From assembly GCA_051294905.1 (NCBI GenBank), contig CM119379.1, positions 5,890,001-5,954,000 of the forward strand: a stretch of 64,000 bases of DNA, read 5' to 3'. The position numbers and the translations under genes were made by a program. The DNA is from Botryllus schlosseri. Taxonomy: Eukaryota. Numbering within the stretch: the first letter of the stretch is position 1; every line of letters begins with the position of its first letter. Shown piece after piece: positions 6,701 to 63,700 of this stretch. The notes beneath the pieces were generated by a model. It ran no database searches, had not been told where the DNA came from, and saw only the letters and a program-made list of their open reading frames with translations.

Positions 6701-9700
6701 GAGATTTTTGAATATGAAATTCATACCAAATACAGAGCAATAATTATGAACTTGAAGTAAATCGCGCAGAGCGCGAAAAAAATTTTCAGTCGAGCTCAGC
6801 TTCGCGATCTCCTTCAGATGCTTTCACGACCCCAAGGGGCACGCGTCCCCCAGATTGAGAACCAATGCCTTAGAATTATCATGGTGAATTATACTAAAAA
6901 AAGTTTAATCAGGTCCCTGCACTAATTTGATTTTTAGTACGCATTTTATCAATATTTTTAATAAGTTTCTGTAGACTTTCGCGGGCCGCACAGAACGGTG
7001 TTGCGGGCCGCATGCGGCCCGCGGGCCGTAGTTTGCCCACCCCTGGCGTACACCGACGAAAACAAAATGCTGTCTTAGTTGTGGGAATTGACAAAATTTA
7101 AGTACTTAAAAGGTATAACATTCTATGTTGTAAAGAAACGAAAATCGATACGTATTGTACCTACAAATTAGACGATTCCCTTCCTGATAACGGATTACAA
7201 CTTTGTAACAAATTTGATGGATATCTGATACAATGCCAATATTGTGGAATTCAAATAAACGGGAGTTTATATGAAATATTTTCATTGTCGTGTTCGGATA
7301 TATCAAAAGCTAAGAAGACCTTAATCTTATGCAGAATTACTTCCAGCACTGTGTGTTTAGCAAAGAAATTGAGACTTCTAAAATCTCGTGGCAAGTTTTT
7401 GATACAAGATTCTCGTCAACAATAATCTTTTAAGAGACGATTTGAGGTACAAAACTTCAATATACAATTGAATGATATACTTATATTGAAATATCGACTA
7501 TTTTTGAGCTGATGAGTACCATTGACGAGTGTGTCGGAAATATTCCGGTTTATATCAATATGAATTAATTATTCAGCTGTACGTATCGTGACATGTTATG
7601 CAGGAATGATTGATCCACTTACCCCGCGTCAGTGTTGGTGGTATGATCTCTCGTCGGTCCAGTCCCGGTGTTTGTCGGCGAGTCTGCACGTCTGCGCTCC
7701 CAATCGAAATCATCTTCCGCGGAGTTGTAACCATTGCATAAGTCGTCTTCGAAATCGCATTTAGTGTAAAGAACGCAAGACGCCTCGTCTGATGCATCGC
7801 CGCAGTTATCCGTCATATCACAAACAGTGTCGACCGAAACGCAAGCTCCATTGGCACACCTGAGAAATCAAGGTAATGTATCGATATCCGAATTTTACTA
7901 TTAAATCATCCTTCCTTCGGGTTGAGCCATCCGACCTTCGTTGAATATGCAAGGAGTAACAAAAATCACATTTGCATTGTGTGTACTGTATATTGCATTG
8001 CACATTGTGTGTGTGTCTTGGCCAGATGCAAATATAATCTGACGATTGATTGATTGATCACTATGCCACTGGACTCACAAAATTCGAGCAGTTCCCCGTA
8101 ATATACTTGTACTCACTGGTATTCATCGCCAGCACAGGAAGGCTCAGGCTGGGGAAGCGCACAAGCACTGTATTCAATGTCGTCCACCGCGAGATCGCTG
8201 GGTCCGGTCACACTTTTGAATGCAATAAAGGTGAGAAGGTATGGTTGGGAGATCCGTCCTGCAGAAATGGGAGTTATGATGTAAGGAAAACTGAAATGTA
8301 GCGAACAACAAGCAATACAACTTGTTTTGTTGAAACTAGCAACTTTATTTTGATTGTTCGGTTTCTTAGAAAACAACTGTGAATTGCTAGCCTCTATTAT
8401 TTTGTCAAATGTCTCAAAAGTGTACTACTGGAATTTTGAGAATTTCCCTAAAAAGTAATCTTAGCCATAACATATAGCTTGTGTATTGAGCGAGTTGTAG
8501 GCTAATAGTCAGCCCTCGAGACTATCGGTCCCACAATCTGATATATCAACTTCACCCACTGACAAATGCCAAATTCATTTTCATGGCTTGTCCTTTTATT
8601 ATCTTCGATTATTTTCACTCAATGTGCATGTGCATATCTCTTATTTACACGCTGAAGGCCAAAGTAGGTGTCTGATTAAAAGAATACTCCAAGTCCCTTT
8701 AAATAGGACACCCTCCTACCTTTTCATTATATTACAATCTTGCGGTGTTACTCAATGAATAAATATATCAATAAATGACTTACTGACTGGCTTTTAAAAC
8801 AGTTTAGTACAGTGTTTCCCAACCGGGGAGGAATTCCCCCCTTGGGGGGAATTTTGCAATTTTTAGGGAGGAATTCCACTTTAGAATTATAACGGATTTC
8901 CCAAATTGTTCATGTCCGAACTGTCATGTAGTCAACCAGTTATATCAGAACGTATGCTCCTTATAGCTGTTTTTTTGCTGATAGTATGGTCAAATGCTAT
9001 TTGAAATCTCTTTCTCACATACCAGTTCCCCCTTGTTTTTTTTAAACTAGTTCAGATGTGCTGCAGTTCGCAAGACAATTTTGTAGGCCAGAGACGGCCT
9101 CTCAATCAAATATATTCTAAGCGAGCAAATGTCCTGCCGAATCTATCACAACAAGGCCTCTAACGAAAGTATTTATCTTATATTTTCAAGTCAACATTTT
9201 CATAAAGTGACAAAATATTCCAACGCCATCGGTTCAAGTCAAAGTGATCGCTAGCCTGCCTTTATTTTTAGTGAACAGCTACTCGATCGAAAAAATGCAT
9301 GAAAAACTTGGTGCAATGTTGCCGAAACAGAATGAGAGTCCTAAATTTCAATGAGCTCAAGCAGGATATCTGATCACGTGTATGTTATATATCAGGGCTG
9401 TAACCAAGTCACGAGGCTCCGAGTCAATCTCACTTTAATAGTTTTGACTCGAATCAAGTCGAGTCATTTTCAATTCACTATTGAGTCAAGTCCGACGGTC
9501 CAAGTCACCGAGCATAGGGTCGAGTCAGATTCATGGTACTATGACTCGAATCCGAGTCCAAGACATTGTGTTGACTGCTCAATTTCCAGCTGAAGTCTTG
9601 TTAGACTCACTTTTTATAACTCTGTTTGGTAATATTGAATGATTTTGATTTATAATATACTAATTTTCTTCACTTTGAGCAGTTTATTGTCGCATTTCCA

Positions 9701-12700: not shown

Positions 12701-15700
12701 GACATTCAATGTCTCGTGACTGAAATTCCCAATAAATATCACCTCGCCATATCACAATATCATCCAACGCAATGTCTCCTTGATCTCCCGCACCAATTTC
12801 TCCTTCAAATACCAGGAAAAACGTACCATACGTAATGATCTGGACCTGTCACAATATTGCAGTATATGAATATAATCAGAGCGGGAGTAAAAATACATCA
12901 AGCCACATAATAACGTTATTTTCATTTGCATTCAATATTAGAGTTATAACAGTGATATCTTATCATTTTACGCTACATTTTAATCTAGACGGGTCTGCCT
13001 CCGAATGTAGCATACAGAAAATCAGTTGCAATTTTAAAGATACTCTCTATATAAATTTTAAAGCATGTTTATGCCAATGGAATCTCCCTTGGGTAGAGAA
13101 TGAAATTAAACCTGAAGTTATTCCTTATTAGTCAGAATTCGGCCAACTTGGTTTATATAGAATTGAAAAAGAAGAGACGCCAGTATTTTGTCTAAGAGTA
13201 TGGAATCGACCGTACTTGCGCAAATTTCCATTCGCTCCCCTGATTTCCGCTGATCACCCATTTGTTCTCAACATCTCCCATATTATATCCGTACACCATC
13301 AACAACCTGAGAGTGCCGACGTCGGCGCCGTACATGTGATACCAGAAGTTGACGCAATGGTCGTCGGTCCAGGTTTCGCTCCAATGAATCAAATCCTCTC
13401 CCTCCAAACGAGCTGTGTCGCCCGGTTGTCGATTCGATGCTTCGATGTAAAGGTAACTCCCTGAAAAAAAAACGCCGATTTAAACAAAATCTGCGGTTCC
13501 AATATTTTCATCCGTTCAAGAAATACATATTATGATGTACACCACATAAGACAAAATGCAAGGTAATGAACAGAAATGAGGATTTCAAAATGACTATGTG
13601 CGACTTATCAATGTCGGATCATCATGTTCGGGCTGTATTTCATTGAACGATTCTCTTCAATGCATTTATCCTGCCCTAACTATTTCTCTTGGCATTTTTG
13701 TAATGACACTATAAGAAAAGTGCACACAGTAGACAGAGCCAAGGTTTACATCTAACACGTGAACATGTGCCACACCCTGGCCTTGAACTACAGTCGAAGT
13801 CTCTCGCTGGGTCAATTTTATATAACTACTTTCATTAACGCAAGATACCACAAGAATCGCGACACAGTGGAGAGAATAAAAAGAAGTCAAAACAAATTGG
13901 TGAAATCAGTCAATTAAACTGTCCACTTGCAACACCTAGAAATACAACAACAAAAACAGAAGAACGTGTTCAAACACACTTACACATTTGATATGATAGC
14001 ATTATTATTGGGAATGAGCAGCAGGAAATTCAATGGCTGTCATTCTTGAAAAAAGATGCAGCATTCACAGCTCGTTATGATGGTTAGGTTCGAGCTCCAT
14101 ACACCCAGCGTAACGAATTCCACGGTGCAAACTATCAATTTATTGAAGGTATCTTCCAAGAGGGGGAAATATGATACTGTGCTCCAAATGACGTCATATT
14201 TTGTGTTACGATTGTTGATATACAATGTTCTTTTGAACTCACAACTAGTTGCTGACGCTTATCCCTGACGAGAGTCAGCCGAAAATATTCGGGTTCATTT
14301 CAATATGTTTAGTCTATTCAATTGTATATTGAAGTTCTGTACCTCCAAGAAGCTGTTCAAATGATATTTGAGAAGGAGCAGATCTCACTGAAATGGAGTA
14401 CTTGCTCAATATTCAGAAAACAACTAAATCGGTAATTCGTGTTTACTCTTTACTGATGCGTTGACTGACGCTGATGACTGTTTAATTTTCAAGTCAAAAA
14501 AATGCTTGCTTGGGATTAGCAATTTAAATCCACCTTGTTTGCAGTGAATGTTAAATAAGTAAATATCCAAATATTTTGTTTCGATGCACGCGCTTGTCAA
14601 TTGACAATTAACTATTACTCACCTTTTCCAGTATCATGGTCGCCTGAAGGCCCTGTCGCGGCAGTATCAGTGGCACCACTTCTCAAGATCCAATCAAATT
14701 GGTCATCACCGTACGAGTTGATCCACCCGCCCATATTGCTCTCGAAATCGGTGTTGCCTAGGGGGAAAAATATAAACATTGAGATCGGATATTCTCATCC
14801 GGCAAATCTCAGAAGTATTCCCAAACTACTATCCCTTGAAGAGAACGCATGTATAGTGCCATGAAGCCAGAAATTGAGTCAGGAATTTTTCTCAATGAAT
14901 AATCTTCTCCTATACACTTTGCGCAGTTGACACATATTGTCAGCATTTTAGAAGAGACTGGACAATGGACATAATAGAATAGGCTTCATTTTTAGGACTT
15001 TGAAACTTTTTTGGAATTATTAACAAAATTTGTAAAACATAGTTTGCAACACTGTGTTGATTGATGCACCAAGAAATTAAAGATAAGCAGCAAAGACGTT
15101 GGCTCAAGTTGAACGCAAGTGCTTTCGTTATACAACTGAGTATTATTATTTGATTCTTTATTCGTTTTACAATCTAGCAAAGTATTCAATTAATCGATAG
15201 ACCTCACTTCACGAGTGTAATGTGGACGCCTCAATAATAACTCCTACATCATATAGACGTCGGAATATGGTGTTAGGAAAATAGTTTATCTTGAAATTGC
15301 ATCCTTGGCAGCACAATTATATGAGCAGAAGATATGACACAAGCAAATTTCGTTAAAATTTCCTGAAAATTTCCTGAAAACATATTTAGCTCAAAGTTAT
15401 ATGCATAAAAAATGTATTTATTTCACACGCAAATTTACAGCACCAACTCTATATCAACTTAAGGTATGTGTTATTGAGAATCCTCTGTTCCATTCTAAAA
15501 CGAAAATAAGCGCCCACTGTCATTTTGCATTAGTAATGAAGATCCACCCAGGAATCCCAAAATAGCATACTCCGATTAACTGCTAAAAGTAAATGATCCC
15601 GGACTAAATATAGTTTACAACTACAGTATTTTTCTGACCTTCTTTTTTTCGATTTAGTTTGTTGAAATCATCATGTTTACTTGTAATCGAGTTGAAACTT

Positions 15701-18700
15701 TCAGTTTCACTTCTACTTCTGTTTCAGAACCAACTTTGGCAACTTTGACCACCCATGCCTATATTTAATACCTGGATAAAGGCATTCGGTATTCTCCGAG
15801 ACCATGACATCATCCAACGCGATATCAGTGGTGCCATCGCCCATAGTAGCCTGGAATATGATCTGCCACGGTCCGGTAGTCACAATCTCGGCACTACCTC
15901 TCTTCCATTCCATGCTCTGGTTTCCGCTGACATGGAATCTCGATTTCTCGACGGTGTTTTCGCGGATTATGATCCTTAATTCGCCCATATTCTGTCCGTA
16001 CAAATTGTACCTGAAACATTGTCACTTGTTACCTCAATACTATAATACCACAATTTTGATGGAAGAACGTACCAGAAATATAGGCAGGCGCCGTTTGGAC
16101 TAGCTGGCCGGGTTGGACTTATGAGTCTCGCAACATCTCCGAAAGATTGCGACGTTGTTGAATCCGCATACATGTAATAGCCGAGGTCGGTTCGTGTAGT
16201 ATGATCAACATCAGGTCCTGAGATGATGATAAATTTTCAAGACTAACAGCAATATGATTGCTGAGACTCTTGGAGGTACGGAATTTCAATATACAACTGA
16301 ATAATATATTCCTATTGAAATAAACCCGCATATTTCGGATGACAATGACCAGGGTTAATCAGCGATTATTATCGGTTATCAACAATTATATGATTGCATG
16401 TATCACAGAAATGGAAACGTGACAGTCGAGATTGGTAGTTTTGGAGATCATTCGAAATTCGAGACTACACTTTGTTTGCTCTACCAAATAACAGCTATTG
16501 TTATCTTTCAATCTTTTAAGCTAATCTTTTTCTGGATAGTAAGGGGCTAGAAACTTGTTTCAAGTCTACATAAGGAGCTGTCACTGGAGGCAGGAGGCAT
16601 GGCAAGACTATTTAGAGGTGCAGTTTCATTTGATATTTGTGCTTCTACGTGTGACATGTCAGATCTTTGGCGCTATCCTAATCTTTTGAAGTATTGATGA
16701 ACTGCTCTTTTGGTGAATAACTAATCTAGAGAGAGAGAAAATTTATTCGTCAACCACCAAATACAAATTAGACCAAACCATAATATAGCCGAAATAAATT
16801 ATTTCATGAACGGTATAGACCGTCATACCTGTGTCACGAAGGAGCTTGGATGTAACAGAATTATTTTAAATATAAATATATATCACAGGCATGCATCAAG
16901 ATGATCACAGATAGAGAGGGTTGAGGATGACAACGACAAAAACCACGATACCTGTATCAAGCGCGGGTGTTGGGCCTTTGTTCCTCTGCCAGTTGAAATC
17001 ATTGCCAGAATCACTTTCGTACCCGCAATTTCCATCTTCAAAGTCGCAAAGGGTAGACGCGGGACAGGCACCCGTGTAAAACTTCACGTCGTCCAAAGCG
17101 ATTTCGCCTACGTTTCCCATCTTCCTGCTTGTTTCGAACACTACTCTGAAAGTCCCGGCGCGACGAATATGTACCTGGAACAGAGTGCATCTTTCGGCTT
17201 AAAGCAGAGTTCCCAAAGGAAGCAAATGGGTCGATTGTGGGGAAAAATGTAGGACTGTTCAATGAATAAATCGATAGATGAGCGACTCCATGCTTGACTC
17301 ATTCCAGCATGGTAAAGGTGAAAAGAAAGAAAGAAAAAAGAACCACTGGTTTAAAGTATTACACATGTGTGGCATGTAGACTTTGATATGATTCGCTATC
17401 ATAAGCATATTAAATTACATATCCAATGAACGTATGGGCAGAATAAAGACTGATATAGCGATCACCAGATCATGGTATTCTGATTTGGGTTTTTGGACTG
17501 CTGCATCTGTCATTTCCTTTTACTAAAATTATCCTACATGTGGTGTCATTGGAGGTGGTCAGTAACGAAGAATTTCCTCTTCTTGAGACTACTCAAAAAG
17601 GTTTTGCTTCCTCCCATTACTCACTCAACTGATTATGATTGTAGAATACTTCTACTTCACAGTTTCAGTTTTTTTAGGCAGAACTAGGACTACAATACTT
17701 GCTTTTTTACTAAATTGAAAATACCCACTTCTACTTGCACTCCAATGGAAATTTACATTACTTCAACTTCTACTTGAGTACCAACGATGAATACTATGAC
17801 TACCGTACATAGAATAAATATAAACAAAAGCGGAAGTAAAGAAAAAGCTTCAGCGTGCTACACTGTATAATTACTGTAGTGTAGCAAGGCGATAATTGCG
17901 CTAACCAGTGTGGTAGTCAAGTACGCAATATTAATAAATATGACGCTAATTGGGTTCAAATAAAAAATTTATCAGAGAGCCATATAATATCATCAAAAGA
18001 GCATATGGTACTACATGGCTCGCCCAAGCCTGAGGTTTCCAACCTCTGTCAATGATATAGGGTTATAAAGTTAGTAATGAAGTATGATCTCTCATGTACC
18101 TGTCCGTGATGCCAAGTTTGATCTCTCGACATGGATCGGGTCCAGACAGTGCTTGTAACGGCGTCTCTTTGCTCGACGAAAATCCGCAATTGACTGACTT
18201 GCGAACCGTACATGTAGTACCAAAACGAGACGCACAGGCCTTCGCTGTCGTAAGCGGTCACATCCGGACTTCTGAACTTAGCCGGCCCTTCGTCATCGAC
18301 AGAGCCAGTGATCTGATCGACGTACAGATCGGTGTACATGTAGTAGCCCTGCACAGTAATTCACATGTGAATGGAAAGACATGGTACTGTAAAGTGTGCC
18401 ACAGTCACCTGAAAATTAATGGCGGGAATACAGTTACTGTTCCAAAGTTGTTTCTTTTTAATAACAAAGGGAATGGATAAATGAATTGGATACCAACTGA
18501 CCGTTACCACTGTGGATATCTGTACATGCATCCAAACATATGTTTATCGGTTGGCCATTTCCATGTAGGTTTTTACTTCAATTCATGTATAAATGTGAAA
18601 AATTTTAAATTCTTGTTTGGTATACGAATACTTGAATCGGAATCAAGTGTTAATCCCCATTCTACTAATAGGTAATTTATTTTCGATTTTATTTTCCGTT

Positions 18701-21700: not shown

Positions 21701-24700
21701 GGAAAAAAAAGTTATTTATGAACAGCCCTATTGACCAACTATATCAATGAATAGAAGTTTCATGATGAGCTGATCCATTCAAACCTGGGTTCTCAATGTT
21801 AGTCCATGTGCAGAAGCCTTCTTCAAACGAGCAATATCCTTTCGGAGGACATTCGCCGACGTCAGTTCTCAAGTCATCGATGGTAATATCTCCAGTCCAC
21901 GAAGATCCAACCTCTCCTTCTATCACAATCTGTGCATCGAAGCGTCACGTAATATCATGTCAATATCAATCAAGAAATTATGATCGATTTGCTTCCTCAC
22001 AGGTTCGGTCATCATGATTATGCCTGTACAGAACAGTCTGCCTACTAAATAGACTTAGTGACTACATTTTTTGAAAAAATGTGTCATTGCAGAATGTATG
22101 TTAGGTAGGGTTACCATATGCTCTACTTTAGGAGGATTTGCATTTGATTTTTCAAGAAATCGAAAATGTCCTTCAAGGACGCCCAAATGTCCAGTAGTCG
22201 ATTTGCAAAAATGAGCTTTTTAGTCAACATAACAGTATAACTGCGGAAGTCGATTTACCAAAATTGCCTTTTTAATCATTTTTGTAGTCAACAACTTTAT
22301 TTCCAGTCAAAAATTTCTTTTCGATTTGTAAAAAGTGTCCACTTTTCCCGATCTCAAAATATGGTAACCCTAAATTGTTTGGGAATTCAGATAAAAGTAT
22401 TAGGGATAAAAAAAGGTCATATATCATAAAAATATCTACATATCGTAATATAGATAATGCGAGTATCTTGAATTTGACTGCAGAGCAATCATTTATTATC
22501 TTAACATTGACCAGGCGTTCATATGTTAGCAAAAATAAACTAAAGGCATTCTTGAAAGTTCAACACAAAGTATTCTACCTACTTTTCAAATATGAGCATC
22601 AGCCTAAAAAAGTAGATTTAAAGACTATGGCCGGGATTTCAATTATTGATATTTTATAGGCTAGATATGGATTTGCAAATGAATAGTCTATTAAATATGC
22701 GTCGGTCAATATTCGTCAATATTCGTCAGCCGAAAATATTTGGGTTCATTTCAATATGAGTATACTACCGAATTGTATGTTGAAGTTCTGTACCTCCAAA
22801 AAGTTCTTCAGATATGGATTTGAAATTGAGAATGAAAATAAATCATAATTGGATTATAATTGACAAGTTTCAAATGGCTTCAATAAAATTAGGAAAATAG
22901 ATTTGAATGCAGACATGATACAAAATGAAATCTGAAAATTTCTCCTACTTTCACACAATGGTTGTGGATTAAATCGTTGAATATTATCCGAATTTAATCA
23001 GCGGCGGCATTTCACCTGGAAATCTTCTTGAAGACTAAATCGAGCCGAAATCTGTCCGTATCGCCACAGATTACCCTGGTTGTTTGCCTTTTTCCAAGCC
23101 AGAAAAGCGATGGACAGGTCTTGTGACACAGGCTTGATGTAAACAGACAACGATCCAATGGTACTGCCGTACATATGATACCAAAATCCAAAGCAATGTC
23201 GAGACCCTGCAGGGTAGACTTCGCTGAATAGCCGAGCTTTTTGGCCTTGAACAGCAGGTCTGTAAAATATGGTCAAGAAGTACTTGAGCATCAGAGGCGC
23301 ATTTAAACCACGTGAGATCTATCATCCGCAATTACCAGTGTGTGATTAATACCTCAATTGAAATTGTGTCATCACTTTAGTTTGAGATAAGAGTTTACTA
23401 TAAAAGTAAGCATTCAAGTGCTTGTAGGAAGCACAGTAAACACTACACTTTAATAGAAGTATGTTTACTTTACTGCTATTTGTTATCTAGAAGTATGTTT
23501 ACTTTACTGCTATATGTTATCTAGAATCAATATTATGTAGAGACAACGTACTTGTTTGATGAGGGTATGATCAGACTAGTTGACCTTGAAGGTCGTATCG
23601 ATCATTCATATCCCATAGCCCAAAACTGTATTGTTTTTTTCTTTCTATGTGATTACTAGGGAAAGTTTTTGCTACTTTGCAACTTTTTTACAGCTTCCTA
23701 GATACTTGGAATCTATGTAGGTCTACTATGATGTTTGGAGGGATTTTATGGAGCAACTCTTTGCAACTTTTCTCTATTTTTTATACCCAATTTTTACTGC
23801 AACTTTTATCAAATATTGCGTAAAAACGTAAAGGAGTGATTTAAAAACATGCTATAAAGATAAACTATTTCTAGTACGGTTGTATTCTCTTTGATTTGCA
23901 TAACAAAGAGCTATGTGATGGGTTAGCTGCATCTAACTATCCGTGACACAATGGCTTGCAAGCAAGAAGTTACTCCTGCTCCTGCCTCAACTACTCCTGC
24001 TAAGCACGACCGTGCCCTAACAATATGCTAATAGATCGTGCTATTAATTCTGTCGTTTAAATTTGAGATATTTTCCCATTTCACGATCGCCCAGGCGAGA
24101 CTACTGAAAATAATATTTTCACTGGGTCACCTTTCTAAGGCTATTGATTTTGGTAAAGTCGCCTAGTGTGAGTTTTTCTGCAACGCCTTGGGTCAAGTAC
24201 CTAAGGGGTTTGGGGTGTGTTACTTGACTTTTTTTAGTAGGAGGGGGTTATCGCCATGCTGTTTGACTTTTGGGGGGATATTATTCCCCATTGTGTAATT
24301 TTCTTGCTGTGTACCGGGAAAAAATGTAATTTTTGGGCGGTCTCGCTGGAATGTCGGTGAAATGGCAAAGTAACAAACTTGACAGCTCTGCAGGAACAAG
24401 GTTGAACAACGGAACCTTTCGGGTATCTCATACCCTGCTAATTAAACAAAAATTATAAATGCAACTTTTCACTGCAACTTTTGTCAAAATTAAGTGCAAC
24501 TGTCTCGCGATTTTAGTGCAACAAAAACTTTCCCTAGTGATTACTGTTTCTTTATGTTTGTGATGTATTTCGATTGGGTGAAAGCAAAAGTCTCTATCAT
24601 CAAAAACCAACTAATTTGACTCTTCAAATTATCAATACTATAACGTAGCCGACGACTTACACTGAGGTTTCGATGTAGGCGTAAAATCCAGTTTCAGTAC

Positions 24701-45700: not shown

Positions 45701-48700
45701 GGAGAACTCCCAATATAAAATAATACAAACCTCCACCAGGCTGTGTTACGGGAGGTTGATTGGTGGGTGGTGGGCTCGGAGTAGGCTGTTCTGCCACAGG
45801 CGGCAGTACTGAGCATGATCCATCCGTAAAAGTAATGTCATCAATTGCTATGTCAGAGTATGACTGAACCCCTATTTCAGCTTCGAAAATGACCTGCAAA
45901 ATATTATTTATGATTTTCTGATTCGATTGTTACCAGTACAGACCGACTGATATTGGATTTTTCAGCCAACATTGATAAGATATGGCATCTGCCCTCTTCC
46001 TAACATGCTGTGATGTCACTAAAACTGCCAATCTTTTTGTAACTCTAATGGCCGATACAGATACCTCTTTCAAGGTGTTATATCGACTAAATATTATTGG
46101 CAAACCGATAATATACGATCTATCTCTAGATACTAGTGTTCGATTGCCCCTTACTCTGTATTCTCTGTCGTAACTTCTGACATGAACTCGGCCCATAGTC
46201 CAACCAATGCCTTGATCTCCAGTCAGCTCCCAAAGTAACAGTTCGGAAAAGCTATTCAAGGTCAGTGGTGGCTGAAAATTACAAGACAGGTAATATTCAG
46301 GTGAGTTTGTCAAGTTCAGAACGCTGTTCTGGTGCCAAACGCTGAAATTGCCTGGTTAAACACAACCAAAATAGCTGTATTGGTAGTGAACAGCAATATC
46401 AATGATACATTTAAAGTATAATATCTAATATTCAACTGGATGTTGATGACAATTAAATATCGCATATCTCTTCTTCAAACATTTCTCCATCGTAAAGCTC
46501 ACATAATAGGTACTAATGACAAGGGCTTGGCAAAAGCTATCACAATTACTAGGCATGATCCAATTTCCAGGTTCTAGTTGGAATTCATAGAAATTTCCTA
46601 GAAAATTTTGTTATTTCGCCTACTGACGCACCTGCTCCATATACACTCTCAGAGTTCCCATACCAGTTCCTTGCATGTGATAGTAGAAGCTCATACACCG
46701 ACCGGCATATGCGGTTTCTGAGAACCATTCCGACGGCAAACGTGCCTTGTCTCCCGGGTTTCTCGGTGACATTGAATCAATGTACATGAATCGACCTGGA
46801 AAAAGAGCATCATCACAGAAATTTCAATCATTTGCAAAATATCCGCAATGGTGCTAGCTGACAATCTAGCAAATGCAACAATACTACATTTTTATCTGGG
46901 AAAGGCATTACATGACTTTCAAAATTTCAAAGTAACAACATTTTCCAACCATCTGAAGTTGGCCACTATATTGTGGTATCTCATGGTAAACATGAAAATA
47001 GCATCACTTTCATTGGGCAATGAGTATTATTGTGAAAGGAAGGTAAATTTCTGAAGAATACCGACCTTGTGAATCGCCGCTCGTATGGTCAGCAGTCGGC
47101 CCGCTGTCCCCAGTCGTTGAGCTCTTGACAGAGCCCTGGTACCACTGCATAGAATCACGTAATGCCGTATTGTGCCAGGTGCAGTACTGTGAGAAATCAC
47201 AGTCCCCAGGAGAAGAGCACGGTTGCTCGACCATGAAAAAATCGTCGATAGCTATGTCTCCTGATTCTCCATCTCCCACAATTGCTTCAAACATGATCTA
47301 AGAGAGAGTTCAAGTATATCATATTTCTGAAAAGGGTATTTAGAAGTTCCGGTAGGTGACAAATGCAGATTATAAGACACTATTGGACTTCAATATTTAT
47401 TGGAATGGTATGTTCATATTGAAATCACTGTGTACCCTCTACGCAGTGCTGACACAGTCTCTGCACACAGAAAATCCAAGCTGCCACAAGAAAGACAGAC
47501 TGATGACTTTTTTTTATTTTTTAGTCGTTATGCACTGTTGTCCAAAGGACCGAGCAGAGAGTTGGTGAGTGTGCGCAGGAGTGGGAACATTAATTGGAAT
47601 ATTTTCGGCGGACATTCGTCAAGTGAGTCAGTGCATAGGCCGCAATAACATCAAAGACAGAAATATACAACATCCTTTTCCTACATCCTACAAGTATTCG
47701 TCAGCAACTAGTAAAGAATTTGAAAGAACATTTTATATCAACAATCATATCACCAAATATCAGCATGGAATTTACAATAATCTAGTAGAAGAGATCGCTC
47801 AGTACAAATATTGTCCAACCGCCTGTCCGTGGCAAGTTTCTAGTCGGTCCGCCATATATAATAGAGTTTTATATATCTCAATTCCAAAATGCAAGAAGTT
47901 TGACGGCTTTTCATTGATTAAAGAAATGAAACATTACATCTTAAATAGATTTGGAACATTTTAACTGTATGGTGTTGTGTTGGAAAATGCATGGTCTACT
48001 TTGGGCGCACGTCACAATGTGAAATTGTTGTGCCAAACTGTTGAAAAGATTCGGAAAAGTTACATGTGAAAGCGACAGACTGCCTTAAATTCTGACTGCG
48101 CAATCAAGCCTACTTGAAAGTATAATGGAGGTTATAGCAAACAGCAAAGTCACATTGCATTCAAAGGAAACCGAACAATCATGAACAACAAATCACAACC
48201 AACCGGACTTCGCGAGCTTAACACTATTTTCAACTGACACTCATCAGCCAAAAAAATTGAGTTTATTTAAATATGGATGTACTATTCAATTGGATATTGA
48301 AGTTCAGTACCTTCAAGAGTCTCTTTAGATAAATTATGTCTTTTTTGCAATTCCCAATTTTATGCATACCGAATGTAAAGGCCAAGCTATACAACATAAT
48401 TATCGTCACCTGATATCTCTTTCCAAGTGGATTGACTGGGAATTGGGCGGGTATCCACTCCGAGCTTTTCTGAGCGGACCTCGTCCATGCCGGGTTAGTA
48501 ACGGTACCGTCTTCGTCCTTTACATAAACATTCAACCTTCCCACAGTCGATCCGACCATGTGGTAGTGGAATCTGGCACACGCTTCACCGTCGTTAGTTG
48601 TGGGCGTGAAAAACGGGGATGAGAGCCTCGCTTTGTCGCCCGGCGTTTGACCCGTGGTTTCGATGTACATGTAGTAGCCTAAAATGAATTGCGGCACAAA

Positions 48701-54700: not shown

Positions 54701-57700
54701 ACGTTCAACGCTTCATATTTGTCAGGTGGTAAGTAGTTCATGGATACATATTCTCATCAACCATCAGGTATTATTGCTATCAGGGAAAATAGTTCGAAAC
54801 AAAACCTTCACCGCGCACTGTAAACCACTCTGTGTTTGTACAGTGAATATGTGTTTGTACAGTGCATATGTGTTTGCAAACAAATGTGGGACACATCGCA
54901 GCCAACCTCATTTTCAAGTGTTGTACTAGAGGAATCTAGTGTCGCTCACTTCCCACTCTTACTTAAAGTAGCTTTGTCTTGTAAGCCTCTACTTGTCACT
55001 ATTTTCGAGCATTACCTGTACTGCTATATCAGTAGGATGGGATGCTACTTTAACCACATCGGTTCAACCACCTTACCGGTCTGGTAGACTTCAGAACGTG
55101 TATTTTAATGATTACTTAATGATTTCTACATTTATTAGTAAACAATACGTTCATGTTGGCAAATTTATTCCACTTCTACCGTAACTGCGCGTTATTTACT
55201 GCTGTTTGCGACTCTGTGTACCTGTCATTATTACGTCACAATGACAATATTCTTTCTATATTTCGAACTATTTTAACCTCATTTACTGGCGTTCGCTCCT
55301 GATGAGAGCCAGTCGAAAAGCTTCGAGTGGAATCCATTTAGTAGTATGCGAGAACATGTTTATCACCAAATGCGCTATAGTGGTGTCACGCATAAGCTAG
55401 CTGCCAAAGAAGCATTTGTTCATAATGAAAATGCATTTTGCAGAAGACACTCAAATAGATTTAGAAGCGGAAATTTCCAAATCAGGCGAAAAATAATTGA
55501 TGCTGGAAATAGATACCGGTACACAATAACAAGTCCTACCAAAGAAAGTGGTTTAGAATGAAGGCGCAAAGATACAAATTTGTTAGTAACCTGTCATAAC
55601 TATAAAAAGATGAACCACTTTGCTTAACGCAGAATGGCTAATGTTGCTGAATATATGCAATACCGGATCTATACTCTGCGATTGTGACAGGACGACCATA
55701 CTTCATACTGATGATGATAATTTTCGTGACGAATGCAAACCTACTTGCAAACCACTTTTATTCCACATAATTCCAGTGGATTTCGATGGTGAATAATTTG
55801 TTTTCAAGGACTTCTACAAAAGAAGTGGATGCAATCGTGTGACAAAGATACCGACATCGCTCAGGTAAGGAAAACCAACCACTTTACTGTTAATAGGAAT
55901 ATGCATTCTAATCTGTTATTGGGCAAATGAGATATCTACATTGTAACATAGAAACATATCGATCTTGAACGTACCAGCCTCTGTCCCATAGGTATGATCA
56001 GTAGTTGGTCCAAGATGACCCGAACTCTTGCCGCCCTGCTGGTAAGTCCAATCCATATTATCTGTCGCATGCTCATTCGTGTATCCGCAAACGCCAGTGT
56101 CTTCGAAGGCACAGAAATGTGTATCTGCAGATGGCGGCAGAGTGCATTCGCCAGCTTCGATGTTAATTTCGTCAATGGCAATGTCGCTGGCCCATGTAAG
56201 ACCAACTACTCCTTCAAATACAACCTGAAATGTTTAGCATCGTTAACTTTAGTTTCATGGCCATGGGCTGATTAGAAAAGCAGTGTTTAAAAAGGTGGGC
56301 AGCAATGTAGCACTTCTGTGTGTCATAGTACCCAAGTATGTCTTGTTTACTTGCAGTACATACTTAACTGTCCATGTTTTAGAACAGCGATTCTTAAATC
56401 TCATTTTGTTCACAGACCCCTTCATATTTTATGGGCGGTAGCTCGTACCCCGAAAATTGGAGAAGCTGCTGAAAGGTAAGTCCTCACATCTACCTACTTT
56501 TTAGATTTCATCAAGTGGTAAGGAGTGTTGGGGAAAATTTGAATTACATTAAAGAATGACGTTTTCACCAAAATAACGCAATGGAGCCCCTGCATTATAA
56601 TAAAAGGATGATTTCAAAAGTGATGGTATTATTAATCGTTCTGTGTGAGCTGTGATCTTAAAGCATACAATTTGAACAGTTTTTAAGGGCAATTGATCGA
56701 AAAAATATGTACCAGCTAGTTCAAAGCTAATTCTTAAAACTACTCAGTTAAGTCAAATTGATTCCTTACATCCTACTCTTATTTTGAATGATTCTGACAT
56801 GTTGAGAATATCTACTTTAAAAACTCTTGGAGGTTTCGGAACTTCAATATAGAATTGAATTATATATTAATATTGATCCAAAGAAGATCCAAAACCGTTC
56901 ACCAAGCTTTAGCGATTAAATCAATGCCAATCAGGCATTACTCCTGTGTACGCGATTGTATTTCGCGTACGGTATTTCACCTTGAATTGCTGGCTTGGAT
57001 TCAAATTCACTTCTGCAAGTAACCAGTTATCGCCCTTGTTTCCTGTTCTTGTCCAATAAGGTGATGCCGGTAGTTCATCTCCATATTGTACGTAAACATT
57101 TAATGTACCCATGTCCACGCCATACATGTGGTAACGAAATGAGAGACATTGAGCCCCTGGAAAAAATTACATTTTTGCATTAGCAAGGGAATGTGACTTA
57201 CAAATCATGGTAATTCAGAATTTGCAAAGGTCTCATAACTGTCACATGGCTTATGCATGTGAGGTTAACAATGTACGTCTTAAAATGATCATTACAATTG
57301 TATTATAACTGCAAAAACTTATATTCCATGGTAACACGATGACAATAAATAGATTCTGCCAATGACTAGAATTGCCAGCAGTAATGAAATACAGAATATG
57401 AATAAGGAACTGAAACTGTTTTCTCGGTTGTGGAGTATGTCAATATTGGATAACATGGACGTGAAATGTGTATAGAGAAGCCAAAAGAATTGAATGAAGA
57501 GTGCTTGTTTTCAACAATGTGGGAAGTATCGCTGCAACCATTACGCTCATGTTGCCAAATTTATTCCACTCGAAGCTTTTCGGCTGGCTCTCATCAGGAG
57601 CGAACACCAGTAAATGAGGTTAACCAAGTTCGAAATATAGAAAGTTTGGTCGTTGTGACGTAATAATGACAAGTACACAGAGTCGCGAACGGCAGTAAAC

Positions 57701-60700
57701 AACGCACGCCAGAAGGAACATCTCTACACGCTGGGAATGTTTCATTAGTGTTGTTTTGTCATTCGGCTGATTTACAGCCAGTTTCGCGTATGTTGTACCG
57801 TTACTGTGCATTGTTTACTGCTGTTCGCGACTCTGTGTCATAAATTTGGTAACATGAACGTATTGTTAGCTGCAATATTAAAGTTCTGTAATTCCAAAAG
57901 CCTAATTTGGGAAGTAATGTCAATACTGTACGATATGAACCTGTGGATGAGTAATGAGTATACAGAATATGAACAAGGAACTGGAACTGATTTCTCGGTT
58001 GCGAAATATGTCAATATTGCTTAACATGGGCGTGAAATGTGTATAGAGAAGACAGAAGAAGTGGAAGAAGAGTGGTTGTTTTCGATAATTAACGCAAAGT
58101 CATGCCGACAGAGGATTTTTTCTCCAGTCAAACAAGTATAAATAAGGCTGGGTTGCAAGCCAGTATCATTTATTTCAAGAGGACTTGAATGAAGGAAGAA
58201 TGGTCGACATGGAAAGCTGTACATCTCAGAACAGTGGGGGTGACAAAACCGCATTCAAATGGACAAAAACTCCAAACAAAAGACTATCTGGAAAGGCTCA
58301 ATTGAGAGAGCTTGTTAACGAATATTGTAAAAATGAGAGCGTGATAGAAAATACTCCATTTATGCACGTAATTTGCAAAGTAGAATATGAAAAAATTGTC
58401 AAAAGCATGTTTCCACCACTCACAGACCAAGAATGTAGGTGTCTGTATGAGGGTGCAAAAAAGCCAGACCATATCCACTATATAGGTAAAAAAGGTAAAA
58501 AAGCCTGACGCATGCCAAAAGGGTGGGGTAGGCGCAGAGCAATTCGTGACGTAAAACACTTTTTCATGACTGTAAAGTATATTCAGTATACGAAAGGATC
58601 AAAGCCTTCCAGATATGGTGGAAAACTACATCATCACGTTCACCACACATATGGAGATCCTTTGCATAAATCCGTTTCAGCAGATGTGCTTTGTAAAATG
58701 ATAACTTCTCAGAAGTTGAAAAAACAATTCAAACAGTGCATTAAAGCAGAACGAGAAAAAAGAGATTTGAGGTCACAGAGATTCCATGACAGGGAATTCT
58801 ACAAAACTGGTGTTTGTCCTAGAAATCCAAAATTTAGAATTTGTAAATATTGTTGAGTCCATCACCTGGACGTGGAATAGGACTTTACTTCGATTTTTTT
58901 TATTCATATAATTTTACGTATATTGTATTTGTTGGACTGTAATGTTATAACAATTTAATTGCTGTAGGCTGTCTGTAGGCTCATCTTGATCACGATTACT
59001 TTAAAGCTCATGACATCAAGTTGCACAAATTTCTACATATCAGCAAACTACTACATACGGTGAGTATAACTTTGTCAAATTACCATTTTCCTCATAGAGG
59101 TATGCCATTTATTCCACACAAACTAACCTGTTACTGTTCTTTCAGCAAACATTCTAGCTGTGCTGCCTGATACCGCCGGGCTGGATGCTTCCATATAGAT
59201 ATAGTAGCCTGATCCAGAGTAATCACTTGATGGACCAGTACCGGTAGAAACGGTAGCCGTGTTCAAACGAGACCATGAGATGTCACTGGTCGGATCGTCA
59301 GTCCAGGCACATCGATCCTCATCAAAGTCACACTCAAATGTTGGTGGGGCTGTTAGACATAAATTAGAATGCAATAGAATAATCTCACACAGCTGGATTG
59401 CAAATTAAGTTCCGAAAGCAATGATATTATTAAATTTAGGTACTATAGCTCTAAAAAACATGACACATGAGAGGATGAATTCATTGAATTTTCAAGTTTA
59501 TCGAATAGATCGAAACAAATGCTGACTGGTAGAGCACAGCCTATTCAAGAATGCATAGTAAGTATCAAAATTACATCTCAATAAATTGCCACAAAAGAAT
59601 ATCAAAAATGATATTTTTTCAAAAACGAAAATTTCAAAAGAAATCGGATGAAATTGTATTTCAAATGCAACTTGCTTCAAGACATCATGCATTCATAACA
59701 CCATCATATAGAGAAGTCAATATGACAAAGAAACAACAGTAAACTTACGTGGTGTTGTTGGTGGAGGTGGTAGAGCATCTGCTGGTAAGATAGGGCAGTC
59801 ACCACGTGTCCATGTGATATCGTCAATTGCAATGTCTCCCAAATTGTCAGAGCCAACTGTCGCTTGGATGGTTATCTGAAGGAGAAAATGGATTATAATA
59901 GCACGTGGTAACGACAGAAATTCTGACAGTAGTAAATGACTAGCCATAGAATATTTGATGAGCTTCTAGAAGGTACAGAACTTCAATACGCAATCGAGTA
60001 ATACATTCATTAAGGAATAAACCCAAATATTTTCGTCTTACACTCGTCAGAGGCAATTGTCAGAAACAAGTAGAGAATACAATGTTCTTTACAAGTCTCT
60101 ATCAGTTGCTGACGATTACATTTAACCAGCGGCAACTGAAAATATATAGGTTCATTTCAATACGAATATATTTTTCAATTGAATAATATATTTGCAAAAG
60201 GAATTGGCACAATGTATGTCCAGTTTCCTTACTGTCGAATTGTAGCTCATACCAGACGTTTATACGAAAGCAAAAATCGAAGAACAATAAATATCAATAC
60301 AAAGATTTGCATGACAATAATCTGGATTATATTAATTGCAAATTAATGAGTGTGAATTCCTAACCTTAACATGGGAGGTCTTGAATATAATTGACCTTAA
60401 ACAAAATTCAGATTTTAACAATTTCCCAACAAACGAAATGTCTGATAATTGAAGTGCAGGACTGAAGCCAACTAACTTTTTACAGTAAGTAAAGTAATTA
60501 TAAAACAAGATTAAATTTTGATGGTACGCACTGAAAATACTTCCGCTGACGAAATCGGTACAGCGGCTTGTGTCCAGGTGCTGCCGAGATTTCTGGCATA
60601 GTACCACACTGTAAAATTGCTCGTCTTGTACACTTGAGAGACTTGTAGTTGACCCATGGAGGCTCCATTCATGTTGAACCAGAATCGGAAACAATACGTG

Positions 60701-63700
60701 CCATCCAGTGCGGGAACCTTCTGACTTGTGAGCCTGGCCCTGTCACCTTCTTCTTGGGGAAAACTTCCATCAGTGTAAACGTAATATCCTAAAATTTTGG
60801 CACCTTATAACATAAACATTCATATTGATCATGGCAATGTAATGAACTTGATGGTCCTTCCGTCGTCAGTTTATAGTAGGGTTACCATATTTCTGTGACC
60901 CAAATTCCGGACACTCTTCAGCGCCCACTAGTGGATTTCAAAATGAGTTATGACGTCTCAGTAGCAAAGCTTTGCACATAAACCAGAGGGGGTCACACGA
61001 TCCGGTTCAGAAGTATGTGGCTGTGTGTTGTGTAACCGGGACCGGAACCACATTTTCAGCCCCTTTCCGTGAGAATAAACAATGATTTTGAGCCCACCAT
61101 AGGGTAATCGCTGCAACTCCTGGGGGAAGCTTGCTCTATGAATATGGTTTCTATATGCATCTGGTCGTTAAATATTTTGAATGATGTCTGTCAATAATAT
61201 TGGTTGTTCCATACATTACTATATTGTTACTACTCTCCGACCACATGATCTCAGAGTTAGCGGGAGGATGATGAGTTCGAAAATAAAGGGAGCGTCATTG
61301 AACATGTTGAGTCATGTTCATGTTCCACAGATAAGATTGTTTATCAGCCTTATGCCGGTGTGCACCACGGAGATTTATAAACACCCCACATCCAGTGGTT
61401 TCCAACCGTTTATGGTCGCGAGTCCATCTCCAATTTGAAAATGTTTCGTGGCCCGATCAATATTTGACGAGCTGATTAACTAAAAGAAGTCAGCACCTTT
61501 GCCCAGACCTACTCACGGGCCGAGTACGTTCAAAATATCCGCGAACCACAGAATAAAGGTAAACGACCCCCACGTTTGGAACCACTATCTTTGAGCATTT
61601 AAACGGCCTTAACGATATCTACGAGTATACCGTTCTCATATAATTGCGATTACGATGAGGCTTATTCCAGTAAATGAAGGGTGTTTTTATTTATATTTGT
61701 TTTCAGTTTTTGCGAGGGTGGTAGCCCCCATAACATAACCCATAAATGTGATTAGCAAATCGCGCGCAGCGCGAAGAAAAATATCATGCATCAGCACAAA
61801 TATTCCCAAAAATAATGATTTTATGTTGATTTACGAAAAAATTGTTAGCCTACGTCAAGTCTTCGAAATTCCGGACATTTGGCATATTTTAGAAATTCCT
61901 CCCGGACTCTAGTTTGGACAGTTAAATTCCGGACATGTCCGGGAAATTCCGGACGTATGGCAACCCTAGTTTATAGTGCTATTTTGAACCAGATTACATT
62001 AGATGAATTTGAAATTTCAAACATTAATATTTATGACGGGATGGAGTCCAAGCCAAAATATGTTGATGGATAATATAATTATGTAATATGGGCAACATTA
62101 AACAAGTCTGACGGAAATGAAACATCCAGCATTCATTACCAGACCTTCCCTTAAGGTTAATTGAAAACAACCGGTAAAGTTCTTCCATTTCAATATGAAA
62201 CGAGGCAATAAGTAGCTTTCTAAGATCATTATTCCCCATATGTGTAGTAACTTACCTACGGAGAGAACAATATCCAGCAAGCTTGTGCTTAACTTGCATT
62301 GCAGCAGAGGTGTTGCAATTAGGGAATGCCTTAATTGCTTTCAAGCAGCTAACACTACACAAAACTAATCTTTGAATATGGAGATGCAATGTCTATGTCA
62401 TCACTCGCATAGAGTACATTGCAAAATATTGTAATGGTATTTGTAATCTTTGCCTTCAGTCAGTCTCTATGCTAACCTGTTCCAGATGTATGATCGCCGT
62501 TCGGTCCTGTATCAGGAGTTGGAGTTGATCCTTTGTTTTCAATCCAATCAAATTCATCCATTCCTTGTGCAGCATTTGACCAAGCACAGAGATCCCTTTC
62601 AAAGTCGCAATCGACTGCAATTCGAAAATTAAAATATAGCATAACGCACCTGACCATTCAAAATTTTTCGCCAGAATAAGCGACCAACTTAATTGTTATG
62701 ACTACATTTTTTTCATGCTGGTAGCATATTGTGCAATGTTCAGGTATTTGGAACTTAGTCATAGTCATGGGAAGAAAACTATCACCGTCACCCAAATTAA
62801 ATTTGTAGAAATATTAAAATCTCATTGCTAGCATTCATGACAGAATATTTTGAAGCTTATCAACACTTTCACTACACATAATTTATTGCATAATTTAATT
62901 CTTACATGGACTTGAACATTCAATGTCCAACATTGTTACATCATCCAACGATATATCTCCATAATAACTGGCCCCTCGAGTTGCCTCAAAAACAACACTG
63001 TAATCAGTGGCGGCAGTGATACCAACTCTGGCAGTCATCCATTGGTCTCCCTGGTCCCCGGACATTTTCCACAATTCTTCATCCGTGTCCTGGAACATCG
63101 GTAATACGACATATTCATCAGGTAGCCTTGGATTGAATGTTACTGGTTCGGTTGATAACATAGTGAGTGAGATATCGATTACATATATGAATTCATACAT
63201 CAGATATGATTCGTTGCATAATTGCACTTTTCAATAGTAATATTCAATTGAATAGTATATTCATATTCGGGTTCATTTCAAAATGAATATACTATCCAAT
63301 TGTACATTGAAGTTCTGTACCTCCACGAAGCTGTTCAAATAGCAATATTCCAGACACACATACATCGTCCTAAACTACTTTTTCAAGCTGTTACCTTCAG
63401 TATCACTCAAAGCACTGGAGATCTAACTTTACTAGAATTTATGGCAGGTATTAAAGTAACAAATTATAGCACTACTTTACCCTCTACTTCACCAGCACTG
63501 ATTTCTACTGTGATCAATTTTATCGAAATTTCATGACTTTATCAAGTCAAAAATAGTAGCACATAAGCAGGGCTTCTTAAACTATAGTCTACATCCCATT
63601 CGGGGTTTCAGAATGTATCACATTCTCACTAACTTTAAAAAAAACTATATAATGGGCGAATGAAAATAACAATCATGACTAATGTTGCTAGCATCAAGTC

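Follow-up and report, generated by a model that had tools for sequence, protein, structure and literature searches.

The 64,000-nucleotide (nt) stretch of the Botryllus schlosseri genome analysed here, hereafter the window, corresponds to G000:C9:5890001-5954000 of a 495-Mb assembly and carries, on both strands between positions 7441 and 63341, the pieces of a short repeat, family A, that contains a hammerhead-ribozyme-like motif. The pieces were located by BLAST of positions 14001-14600 and of the full element unit described below against the window. About 12 loci of ~170-270 bp were obtained, i.e. ~1 per 5 kb, in line with an initial annotation made from the letters alone, which had counted over a dozen pieces at one per 4-5 kb. 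Family A comprises the 3' untranslated region (UTR) and the initial 17-56 nt of the open reading frame (ORF) of a young, abundant, autonomous Penelope-like element (PLE), and its short copies are dead-on-arrival, 5'-truncated insertions of this element. In the reading that we consider probable, the copies are such truncated PLEs and their motif is a hammerhead, for which we infer catalysis, with a stem II formed by a covarying helix between two separated boxes, X and X'.

Copies of family A in the window comprised at most the last 270 nt of the element plus at most its first 70 nt, and tblastn of the PLE protein against the window gave no coding remnants of reverse transcriptase (RT) or endonuclease (EN). 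In the best copy (Table 1), the ATG was located at 14305-14307; without its tail the element ends at 14321, and positions 14322-14359 form a tail of 38 nt; the first 24 amino acids (aa) of the PLE ORF were matched by tblastn from position 14305. The state of the motif in each window copy was read by aligning the copy pairwise with a young one from the genome. By this means the near-intact cores of the initial annotation (29445-29488 and 60021-60064) were recovered, both on the minus strand, as were the decayed ones, with the extents listed in Table 1.

Genome-wide, at least 3200 first-look family A candidates were counted, so that "very abundant" was an apt description. Full element units with an intact 845-aa RT/GIY-YIG ORF were present at 99-100% identity, and the array G000:C6:6608767-6617325 contained two direct and two inverted units at 2683-bp spacing. 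For the 845-aa ORF at L062:3874-6411, RVT_1 was matched with 32.2 bits (E 1e-7, cutoff 29.6) and, at the C-terminus, GIY-YIG with 21.4 bits (E 3e-4), slightly below the Pfam cutoff of 22.6. A homologue 60% identical reached 27.5 bits for GIY-YIG, above the cutoff, and the GIY-YIG motif Y..C.C..YVGRT...R..H was invariant in protein alignment A2. Protein homologues numbered 962; since the best database match was only 64% identical, family A is, by protein divergence, a new PLE family. The initial annotation had advised looking for copies beside RT and GIY-YIG ORFs, where they were indeed found, for instance in the array above; its Penelope-like origin thereby stands, together with the PLE insertion anatomy, and its ORF-less, non-autonomous element (solo pseudo-long terminal repeat, pLTR, or retrozyme-like) gives way to an autonomous one. 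Of the 31-mers of the PLE region, 72-78% were contained in sequencing runs that bear the labels of two other organisms (B and C); near-identical PLE copies may occur under other species labels, owing to close relatives, mislabelling or transfer.

The insertion anatomy was examined in nine aligned full genomic copies. Each consisted of two inverted arms with fixed outer and variable inner ends, one arm bearing an extra ~38 nt, and direct repeats of 9-13 bp enclosed the whole insertion. Inner arm ends extended to variable depth into the EN-coding sequence, and the longest arms were palindromic around a centre and continued into the ORF; the tail was identified as the first ~56 nt of the following unit's ORF. 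Copies at 59 own-genome loci had bimodal 3' ends (reference positions 191-203 and 227-237, ~38 nt apart), and 21 of the loci were head-to-head composites, 17 of them with exactly one tailed arm (tail 38-40 nt) and 14 with flanking direct repeats of variable length (9-13 bp). About half of the family A copies were single arms. The initial annotation had seen neither terminal inverted repeats nor evident target site duplications. Inverted head-to-head pairs do occur in the window, at 7441-7565, 29374-29685, 59950-60185 and 63239-63341; target site duplications are present around young genomic copies, and none were recognisable from BLAST boundaries around the old window copies. Head-to-tail tandems, which had also been proposed as a search target, were not found as short arrays, either in 60 genomic loci or in the window, the sole tandem unit being the 2683-bp coding unit.

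Fixed outer and variable inner ends, the one-end tail, the inverted partner and the partial tandems are published PLE hallmarks: these elements are known to be 5'-truncated, to form partial tandems, to have a truncated partner in inverted orientation and to bear a tail of 30-40 bp at one end (PMC8557442), and for an Anolis PLE two internal RT start sites were demonstrated biochemically, at an interval that matches the tail (PMC11167929). The palindromic centre of the head-to-head insertions (L002:1368-1509) resembled MIR8742 (60 bits against a gathering score of 130); read-through of this centre would give long double-stranded RNA, a possible source of small RNAs.

Base-by-base reading of the best copy, in agreement with the core initially annotated at 14251-14294, gave GCTGAC (14251-56), a GCTT linker, ATCC (14261-64), CTGACGA (14265-71), G (14272), A (14273), GTCAGC (14274-79), C (14280), GAA (14281-83), AATATT (14284-89), C (14290) and GGGT (14291-94), hence the full hammerhead core with a palindromic stem III that had been claimed. 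The first CUGACGA was rejected as the core, as it leaves no stem I and no 10.1:11.1 pair. A descriptor was composed of the core, a 10.1:11.1 pair, at least 5/6 upstream-box pairs, the palindrome and a stem I of at least 3 bp; it was matched five times in the window, two of the matches belonging to a second family (family B, see below), and 0 times in 20 shuffles of 250 kb. Stem I measured 3-6 bp in every match. The motif lies on the sense strand, with the predicted cut (L062 3859/3860) 14 nt before the AUG of the ORF.

For comparison, UTRs were taken from PLE relatives found through protein similarity. Across 14 PLE lineages the hammerhead core positions were invariant or nearly so (U4, G5, A6, A9, A13 and A14 invariant), position 17 was C, U or A and never G, and in two lineages C3-G8 was replaced by U3-A8, a double change already described for PLE hammerheads (PMC4209133). 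The four stem I pairs were paired in 79-81%, all with double changes, although three alignment rows were misaligned. The stem III segment varied by lineage and was self-complementary throughout (AAUAUU, AAGCUU, AACGUU, AGUACU, AAAAUUUU, AAACGUUU, AUAUAUAU, AAAAGCUUUU), a palindrome being itself a requirement of the descriptor; of the motifs recognised by eye outside the descriptor, those of L064, L070 and L092 were palindromic and that of L066 was one A off. The segment is 6-10 nt long and can pair only between two copies, and because of this self-complementarity any activity would be as a dimer.

Stem II is the unusual part. Family A has 9 nt between A9 and G12 (8-9 nt among the variants), a spacer that limits a stem II hairpin to one 10.1:11.1 pair (G10.1-C11.1 in family A); a hairpin of 4-8 bp directly after A9, as expected of type I hammerheads, is lacking. 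The 1-bp helix II of the initial annotation was therefore literally right, but it had been overlooked that a helix of 6 bp, covarying and formed with a box further upstream, takes over from stem II. Box X is located 2-5 nt upstream of stem I, and X' is formed by the six nt before position 11.1. The short-spacer form was found in relatives with proteins 43-65% identical, and X and X' were exact complements in all of them; relatives 29-40% identical carried an ordinary hairpin mini-hammerhead at the equivalent position. Twelve different X/X' sequences were found across the 14 lineages: GCUGAC/GUCAGC, UCUGAC/GUCAGA, UCUAGC/GCUAGA, UCCGAC/GUCGGA, UGACGC/GCGUCA, ACUAAC/GUUAGU, UGUAGC/GCUACA, UCCAGC/GCUGGA, UCAAGG/CCUUGA, GGCAAU/AUUGCC, ACAAUU/AAUUGU and ACUGGC/GCCAGU.

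In the 14-lineage alignment of X:X', 10.1:11.1 and stem I, 89.5% of the cells were paired, compared with 28-36% when the partners were slid; double-sided changes were present in 11/11 pairs, and the observed score was reached by 0/500 shuffles. RNAalifold recovered the X:X' helix unprompted. As a control for circularity, motifs were located by the core alone, with no pairing requirement, upon which a perfect 6-mer complement was detected within 30 nt upstream in 14/14 UTR motifs (chance 0.003-0.017 each) and in 0/3 stray matches from coding regions. In a maximum-likelihood tree of 40 RT/EN proteins, rooted at the midpoint for drawing only, the variant-bearing PLEs formed one clade (100/100), including one row scored as "none" whose UTR is cut by a contig end, and hairpin-bearing elements fell outside. 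Because of this covariation, a conserved pseudoknotted structure in the PLE sense RNA, 14 nt before the AUG, can be regarded as demonstrated at the level of comparative sequence. A local hairpin CUGAC-GAGU-GUCAG was rejected in its place: it is not conserved and is impossible in lineages with X' GCUAGA, GCGUCA, CCUUGA or AUUGCC. Column 7 of alignment A3, directly after box X and outside every proposed helix, was G in 13/14 lineages.

Mechanistically, the following course of events is proposed. On the basis of published PLE biochemistry, the element would be transcribed from tandem units, and RT would begin cDNA synthesis at two internal sites, ~17 and ~56 nt into the ORF of the next unit. Most insertions would then be heavily 5'-truncated, retaining the 3' UTR, the ribozyme motif, the ATG and, in some, the 38-40 nt tail, and would often be laid down as two head-to-head arms with target duplications of 9-13 bp around them. 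In the RNA, considerations of geometry suggest that G10.1-C11.1 stacks on X:X', by which a 7-bp stem II would be rebuilt, and that the single nt separating 10.1 from X' spans the deep groove along 6 bp, in the manner of loop 1 of an H-type pseudoknot. The linker of 2-5 nt from X to stem I would keep stems I and II joined at their distal ends and so substitute for the loop-loop contacts that fast hammerheads need. As two copies would be required for stem III, cutting would reduce tandem transcripts to unit-length pieces, in keeping with the PLE hammerhead literature; cleavage after H17 in dimers would yield unit RNAs with a 14-nt leader, and single truncated copies in host introns would be expected to be inert.

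Hepatitis delta virus (HDV)-like ribozymes give uncapped unit RNA for R2 and L1Tc. That a PLE subclade, including the two families of the window, would likewise use a dimer-active hammerhead topology not met with in the literature searched, cutting 14 nt before the AUG to release an uncapped, unit-length mRNA or template, is put forward tentatively, as a possibility that we would not at present favour.

Several results weigh against a catalytic hammerhead with X:X' as stem II. The steric case made for a pseudoknot comes from reasoning and not from a model. The minimum-energy fold of family A (L062:3829-3866) pairs the core CUGAC with GUCAG and CCGAA with UUCGG (z = -1.5); this predicted fold would be an inactive alternative and could act as a switch. 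The Rfam hammerhead search that had been suggested at the outset was run: at gathering thresholds the window gave 0 hits, and with E up to 10 a full copy and 11 related loci gave no hammerhead, the canonical PLE mini-hammerheads being missed too, so that this negative carries little weight. In single-cell RNA of the same organism (3841 reads, both strands), a library type ill-suited to the question, read ends did not pile up at the cut site predicted between L062 3859 and 3860. The PLE mini-hammerheads described earlier are poor cleavers, dimers included (PMC4209133), and catalytic mutants were without effect on PLE insertion in vitro (PMC11167929). Most of the single-cell reads came from truncated copies within other transcripts, and depth was highest over the last 135 nt, with a profile that follows genomic copy number. 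Bulk RNA from two runs of other organism labels gave no reads aligned to the PLE region. The Anolis PLE is likewise devoid of RNA-seq ends at its hammerhead site (PMC11167929).

Some of these observations would suit a different role for the motif, in which the X:X' stem-loop, whose loop holds CUGAnGA, is a hammerhead-derived structural element and not a ribozyme helix, serving RT in recognising its template RNA close to the start sites or acting as a promoter or leader of the pLTR, cleavage having been lost with the hairpin. The RNA reads without a cleavage signature agree with it, as do the short distance from the motif to the RT start sites, which follow it at 31 and 70 nt, the unaffected in vitro insertion of PLE hammerhead mutants (PMC11167929) and the Naiad PLEs, which thrive with a mere "HHR core" that matches no stem descriptor (PMC8557442). 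A structural element of this kind would, however, have had to keep the core positions (nearly) invariant across lineages with 43-65% protein identity, and with them the 10.1:11.1 pair, a non-G position 17, the complementarity of stem I, the palindromic stem III and the U3/A8 covariation in the core. Such joint conservation of core and stems is hard to explain without hammerhead folding, and we regard the structural-element role as unlikely.

Other explanations would alter the identity of the repeat itself. A foldback or miniature inverted-repeat (MITE)-type DNA transposon with long terminal inverted repeats, its hammerhead string arising by chance, would account for the many copies that consist of two inverted arms of at least ~143 nt and for the miRNA-like palindromic centre (the MIR8742 match noted above). 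The arms, however, derive from the 3' end of a unit that codes for RT and EN and are truncated at their 5' ends, each composite has asymmetric ends with one tail, target site duplications are not of fixed length (9-13 bp), the inner ends vary and about half of the copies are single-armed; moreover, the motif is kept in unrelated-looking UTRs of other PLE lineages. This identity, already refuted by the RT/EN-coding master unit and the asymmetric one-tail ends, is scarcely credible. It is also very improbable that the repeat is a retrozyme-like family in its own right, non-autonomous and propagated through small circular RNAs. Short copies are commoner than long ones, the RNA depth falls mainly on the last 135 nt, and animal retrozymes have been proposed to be PLE derivatives (bioRxiv 10.64898/2026.07.22.740005), yet short head-to-tail arrays were absent from the 60 loci, the 5' truncation points form a continuum into the ORF, the sequence equals the 3' end of the master element and the depth profile merely tracks genomic copy number.

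The reading as a truncated autonomous PLE with a variant hammerhead can be set against known systems. In metazoan PLEs, minimal type I hammerheads have a stem II hairpin of 6-8 bp and one bulged nt after A9 (PMC4209133). Family A resembles them in its location at the pLTR/3' end, the CUGAnGA/GAAA core including the U3/A8 form, a stem I of 4-6 bp, G10.1-C11.1, the palindromic 15.x/16.x segment implying dimer action, and motif pairs that often lie on opposite strands 100-700 bp apart; it differs in the 9 nt between A9 and G12 and in the helix with a box upstream of stem I. The published PLE descriptor would miss the variant. The element as a whole agrees with the Poseidon PLE of Anolis (PAc, PMC11167929) and with general PLE anatomy (PMC8557442) in its RT with C-terminal GIY-YIG, tandem pLTRs, inverted 5'-truncated partners, a 30-40 bp tail at one end and two RT start sites in the ORF start. 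In PAc, the ORF starts within the ribozyme and the cut falls 26 nt downstream of the start codon (PMC11167929), whereas the cut predicted for family A is 14 nt upstream of the AUG.

In November 2026, RNA viruses were reported to carry, just before ORFs, type I hammerheads whose helix II has 0-2 bp (PMC13725137). Those in mycovirus 5' UTRs share with family A the very short stem II hairpin and a position a few nt before the start codon; unlike family A, they have a long stem III, act as monomers and have no reported compensating pseudoknot. They are weakly active in vitro, and cleaved RNA ends have been found in vivo (PMC13725137). The SGC/CSG permutations and the hammerheads with a stem I-stem II helix (PMC10085705) are alike in their pseudoknotted topology, and these do cleave; there too one strand of stem I and one of stem II are connected through a short linker, which may hold the stems together. 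In family A, by contrast, the order is that of an ordinary type I hammerhead (C-G-S) and the 5' strand of stem II is detached from CUGAnGA, whereas, according to this 2023 study, whose group had also catalogued PLE hammerheads, known alignments never place more than 1-2 nt between CUGAnGA and the adjacent stems (PMC10085705). Metazoan non-LTR retrozymes have the type I hammerhead, the palindromic stem III and the proposed PLE origin in common with family A, but they are short non-coding tandems, and family A is dispersed and 5'-truncated, with a coding master element. A replacement of stem II was not found described in the literature searched, which covers the work on PLE hammerhead dimers incompletely, so that a prior description is possible; full-text searches for the motif strings returned unrelated primer sequences only.

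The features of the window are collected in Table 1. Copies at 29.4, 42.6, 47.7 and 48.3 kb are situated between exons of a minus-strand multi-MAM-domain gene, for which the term "intronic" in the initial annotation is fair. This host gene extends over ~25085-48715 (-), with exons in the ORFs 25085-25510, 31341-31769, 35235-35630, 39378-39773, 40197-40745 and 48263-48715, and its introns hold PLE tails in both orientations.

Table 1 Family A copies in the window and parts of the motif in the best copy (window positions)
Feature	Position	Strand	Remarks
Decayed composite copy	7441..7565	+	core remnant 7508-7555, X' with 2-nt deletion
Best family A copy, 5'-truncated PLE insertion	14189..14362	+	3' UTR, hammerhead-like motif, ATG, tail
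Box X (GCUGAC)	14251..14256	+	putative 5' strand of the 6-bp helix standing in for the stem II hairpin
Stem I 5' strand (AUCC)	14261..14264	+	pairs with 14291-14294
Core CUGACGA (C3-A9) and G10.1	14265..14272	+	sequence reading, descriptor
Box X' (GUCAGC), then C11.1	14274..14280	+	X' pairs with 14251-14256
G12 A13 A14, self-complementary AAUAUU (stem III, intercopy only), C17	14281..14290	+	predicted cleavage after 14290
Stem I 3' strand (GGGU)	14291..14294	+	pairs with 14261-14264
Decayed copy	16268..16360	-	motif 16318-16360; core reads CUGGUCA, GAAA minus one A
Copy 5'-truncated within motif	22725..22815	+	begins at X'; tail present
Head-to-head composite	29374..29685	-	long arm 29374-29641 (-) with tail; short inverted arm 29640-29685 (+); motif 29445-29488 (-) intact except that C11.1 is U
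Decayed copy	42563..42670	+	motif 42597-42641, core deletions
3' UTR fragment	47694..47760	-	ends at box X
Decayed copy with tail	48223..48331	+	motif 48223-48268; adjoins MAM-domain exon
Tail and ORF-start fragment only	56825..56874	-	BLAST
Older head-to-head composite	59950..60185	-	near-intact motif 60021-60064 (-), core intact, upstream-box helix with one mismatch; decayed motif 60108-60157 (+)
Very short head-to-head composite	63239..63341	+	truncated within motif; tail present

Family B, a second and unrelated-looking PLE tail family, is represented at 55285-55330 (+) and 57566-57611 (-), the two copies having ~150 nt of 3' UTR in common. Its architecture is that of family A with a different helix (X/X' ACUGGC/GCCAGU, stem I UCGCUC/GAGUGG, palindrome AAGCUU). 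Further elements were noted around the motif. A cAMP response element (CRE)-like TGACGTCA occurs in the pLTR upstream of it in families A and B (window 14189-14196; L062:3758-3765), and in relatives (L069, L063) CCAAT and TATA(A/T)A boxes precede box X by ~30-37 nt; initiation of transcription at such promoter-like boxes would place the ribozyme motif at the extreme 5' end of the RNA. Several PLE relatives have, immediately between hammerhead and ATG, a hairpin similar to the 3' stem-loop of histone mRNAs, at L149:2956-3001 and L074:1319-1365 (Rfam RF00032 with 28 bits and E 4e-4, short of the gathering score of 34) and, by eye, in L064, L147 and L148; family A is without it. This hairpin could serve non-polyadenylated 3'-end formation or the binding of stem-loop binding protein (SLBP).

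The association of PLEs with hammerheads (since 2014) and their insertion anatomy were known already; what is noteworthy is the variant architecture of stem II, which is well supported by comparative analysis. The stem II hairpin, assumed to be contiguous with CUGAnGA in every published descriptor or alignment, would be replaceable by a strand from elsewhere in the RNA, and the variant would account for such PLEs being scored as hammerhead-less by descriptors and Rfam. It would provide a natural test case in which the juxtaposition of stems I and II is enforced by topology; if true, the two stems are tied by connectivity rather than by loop-loop contacts. With its clade-wide conservation and a predicted cut site before the AUG, the role of PLE hammerheads would become testable through the contrast between pseudoknot and hairpin. 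For the annotation of this genome, the hundreds to thousands of "intronic hammerheads" are dead-on-arrival PLE tails and not regulatory ribozymes of host genes.

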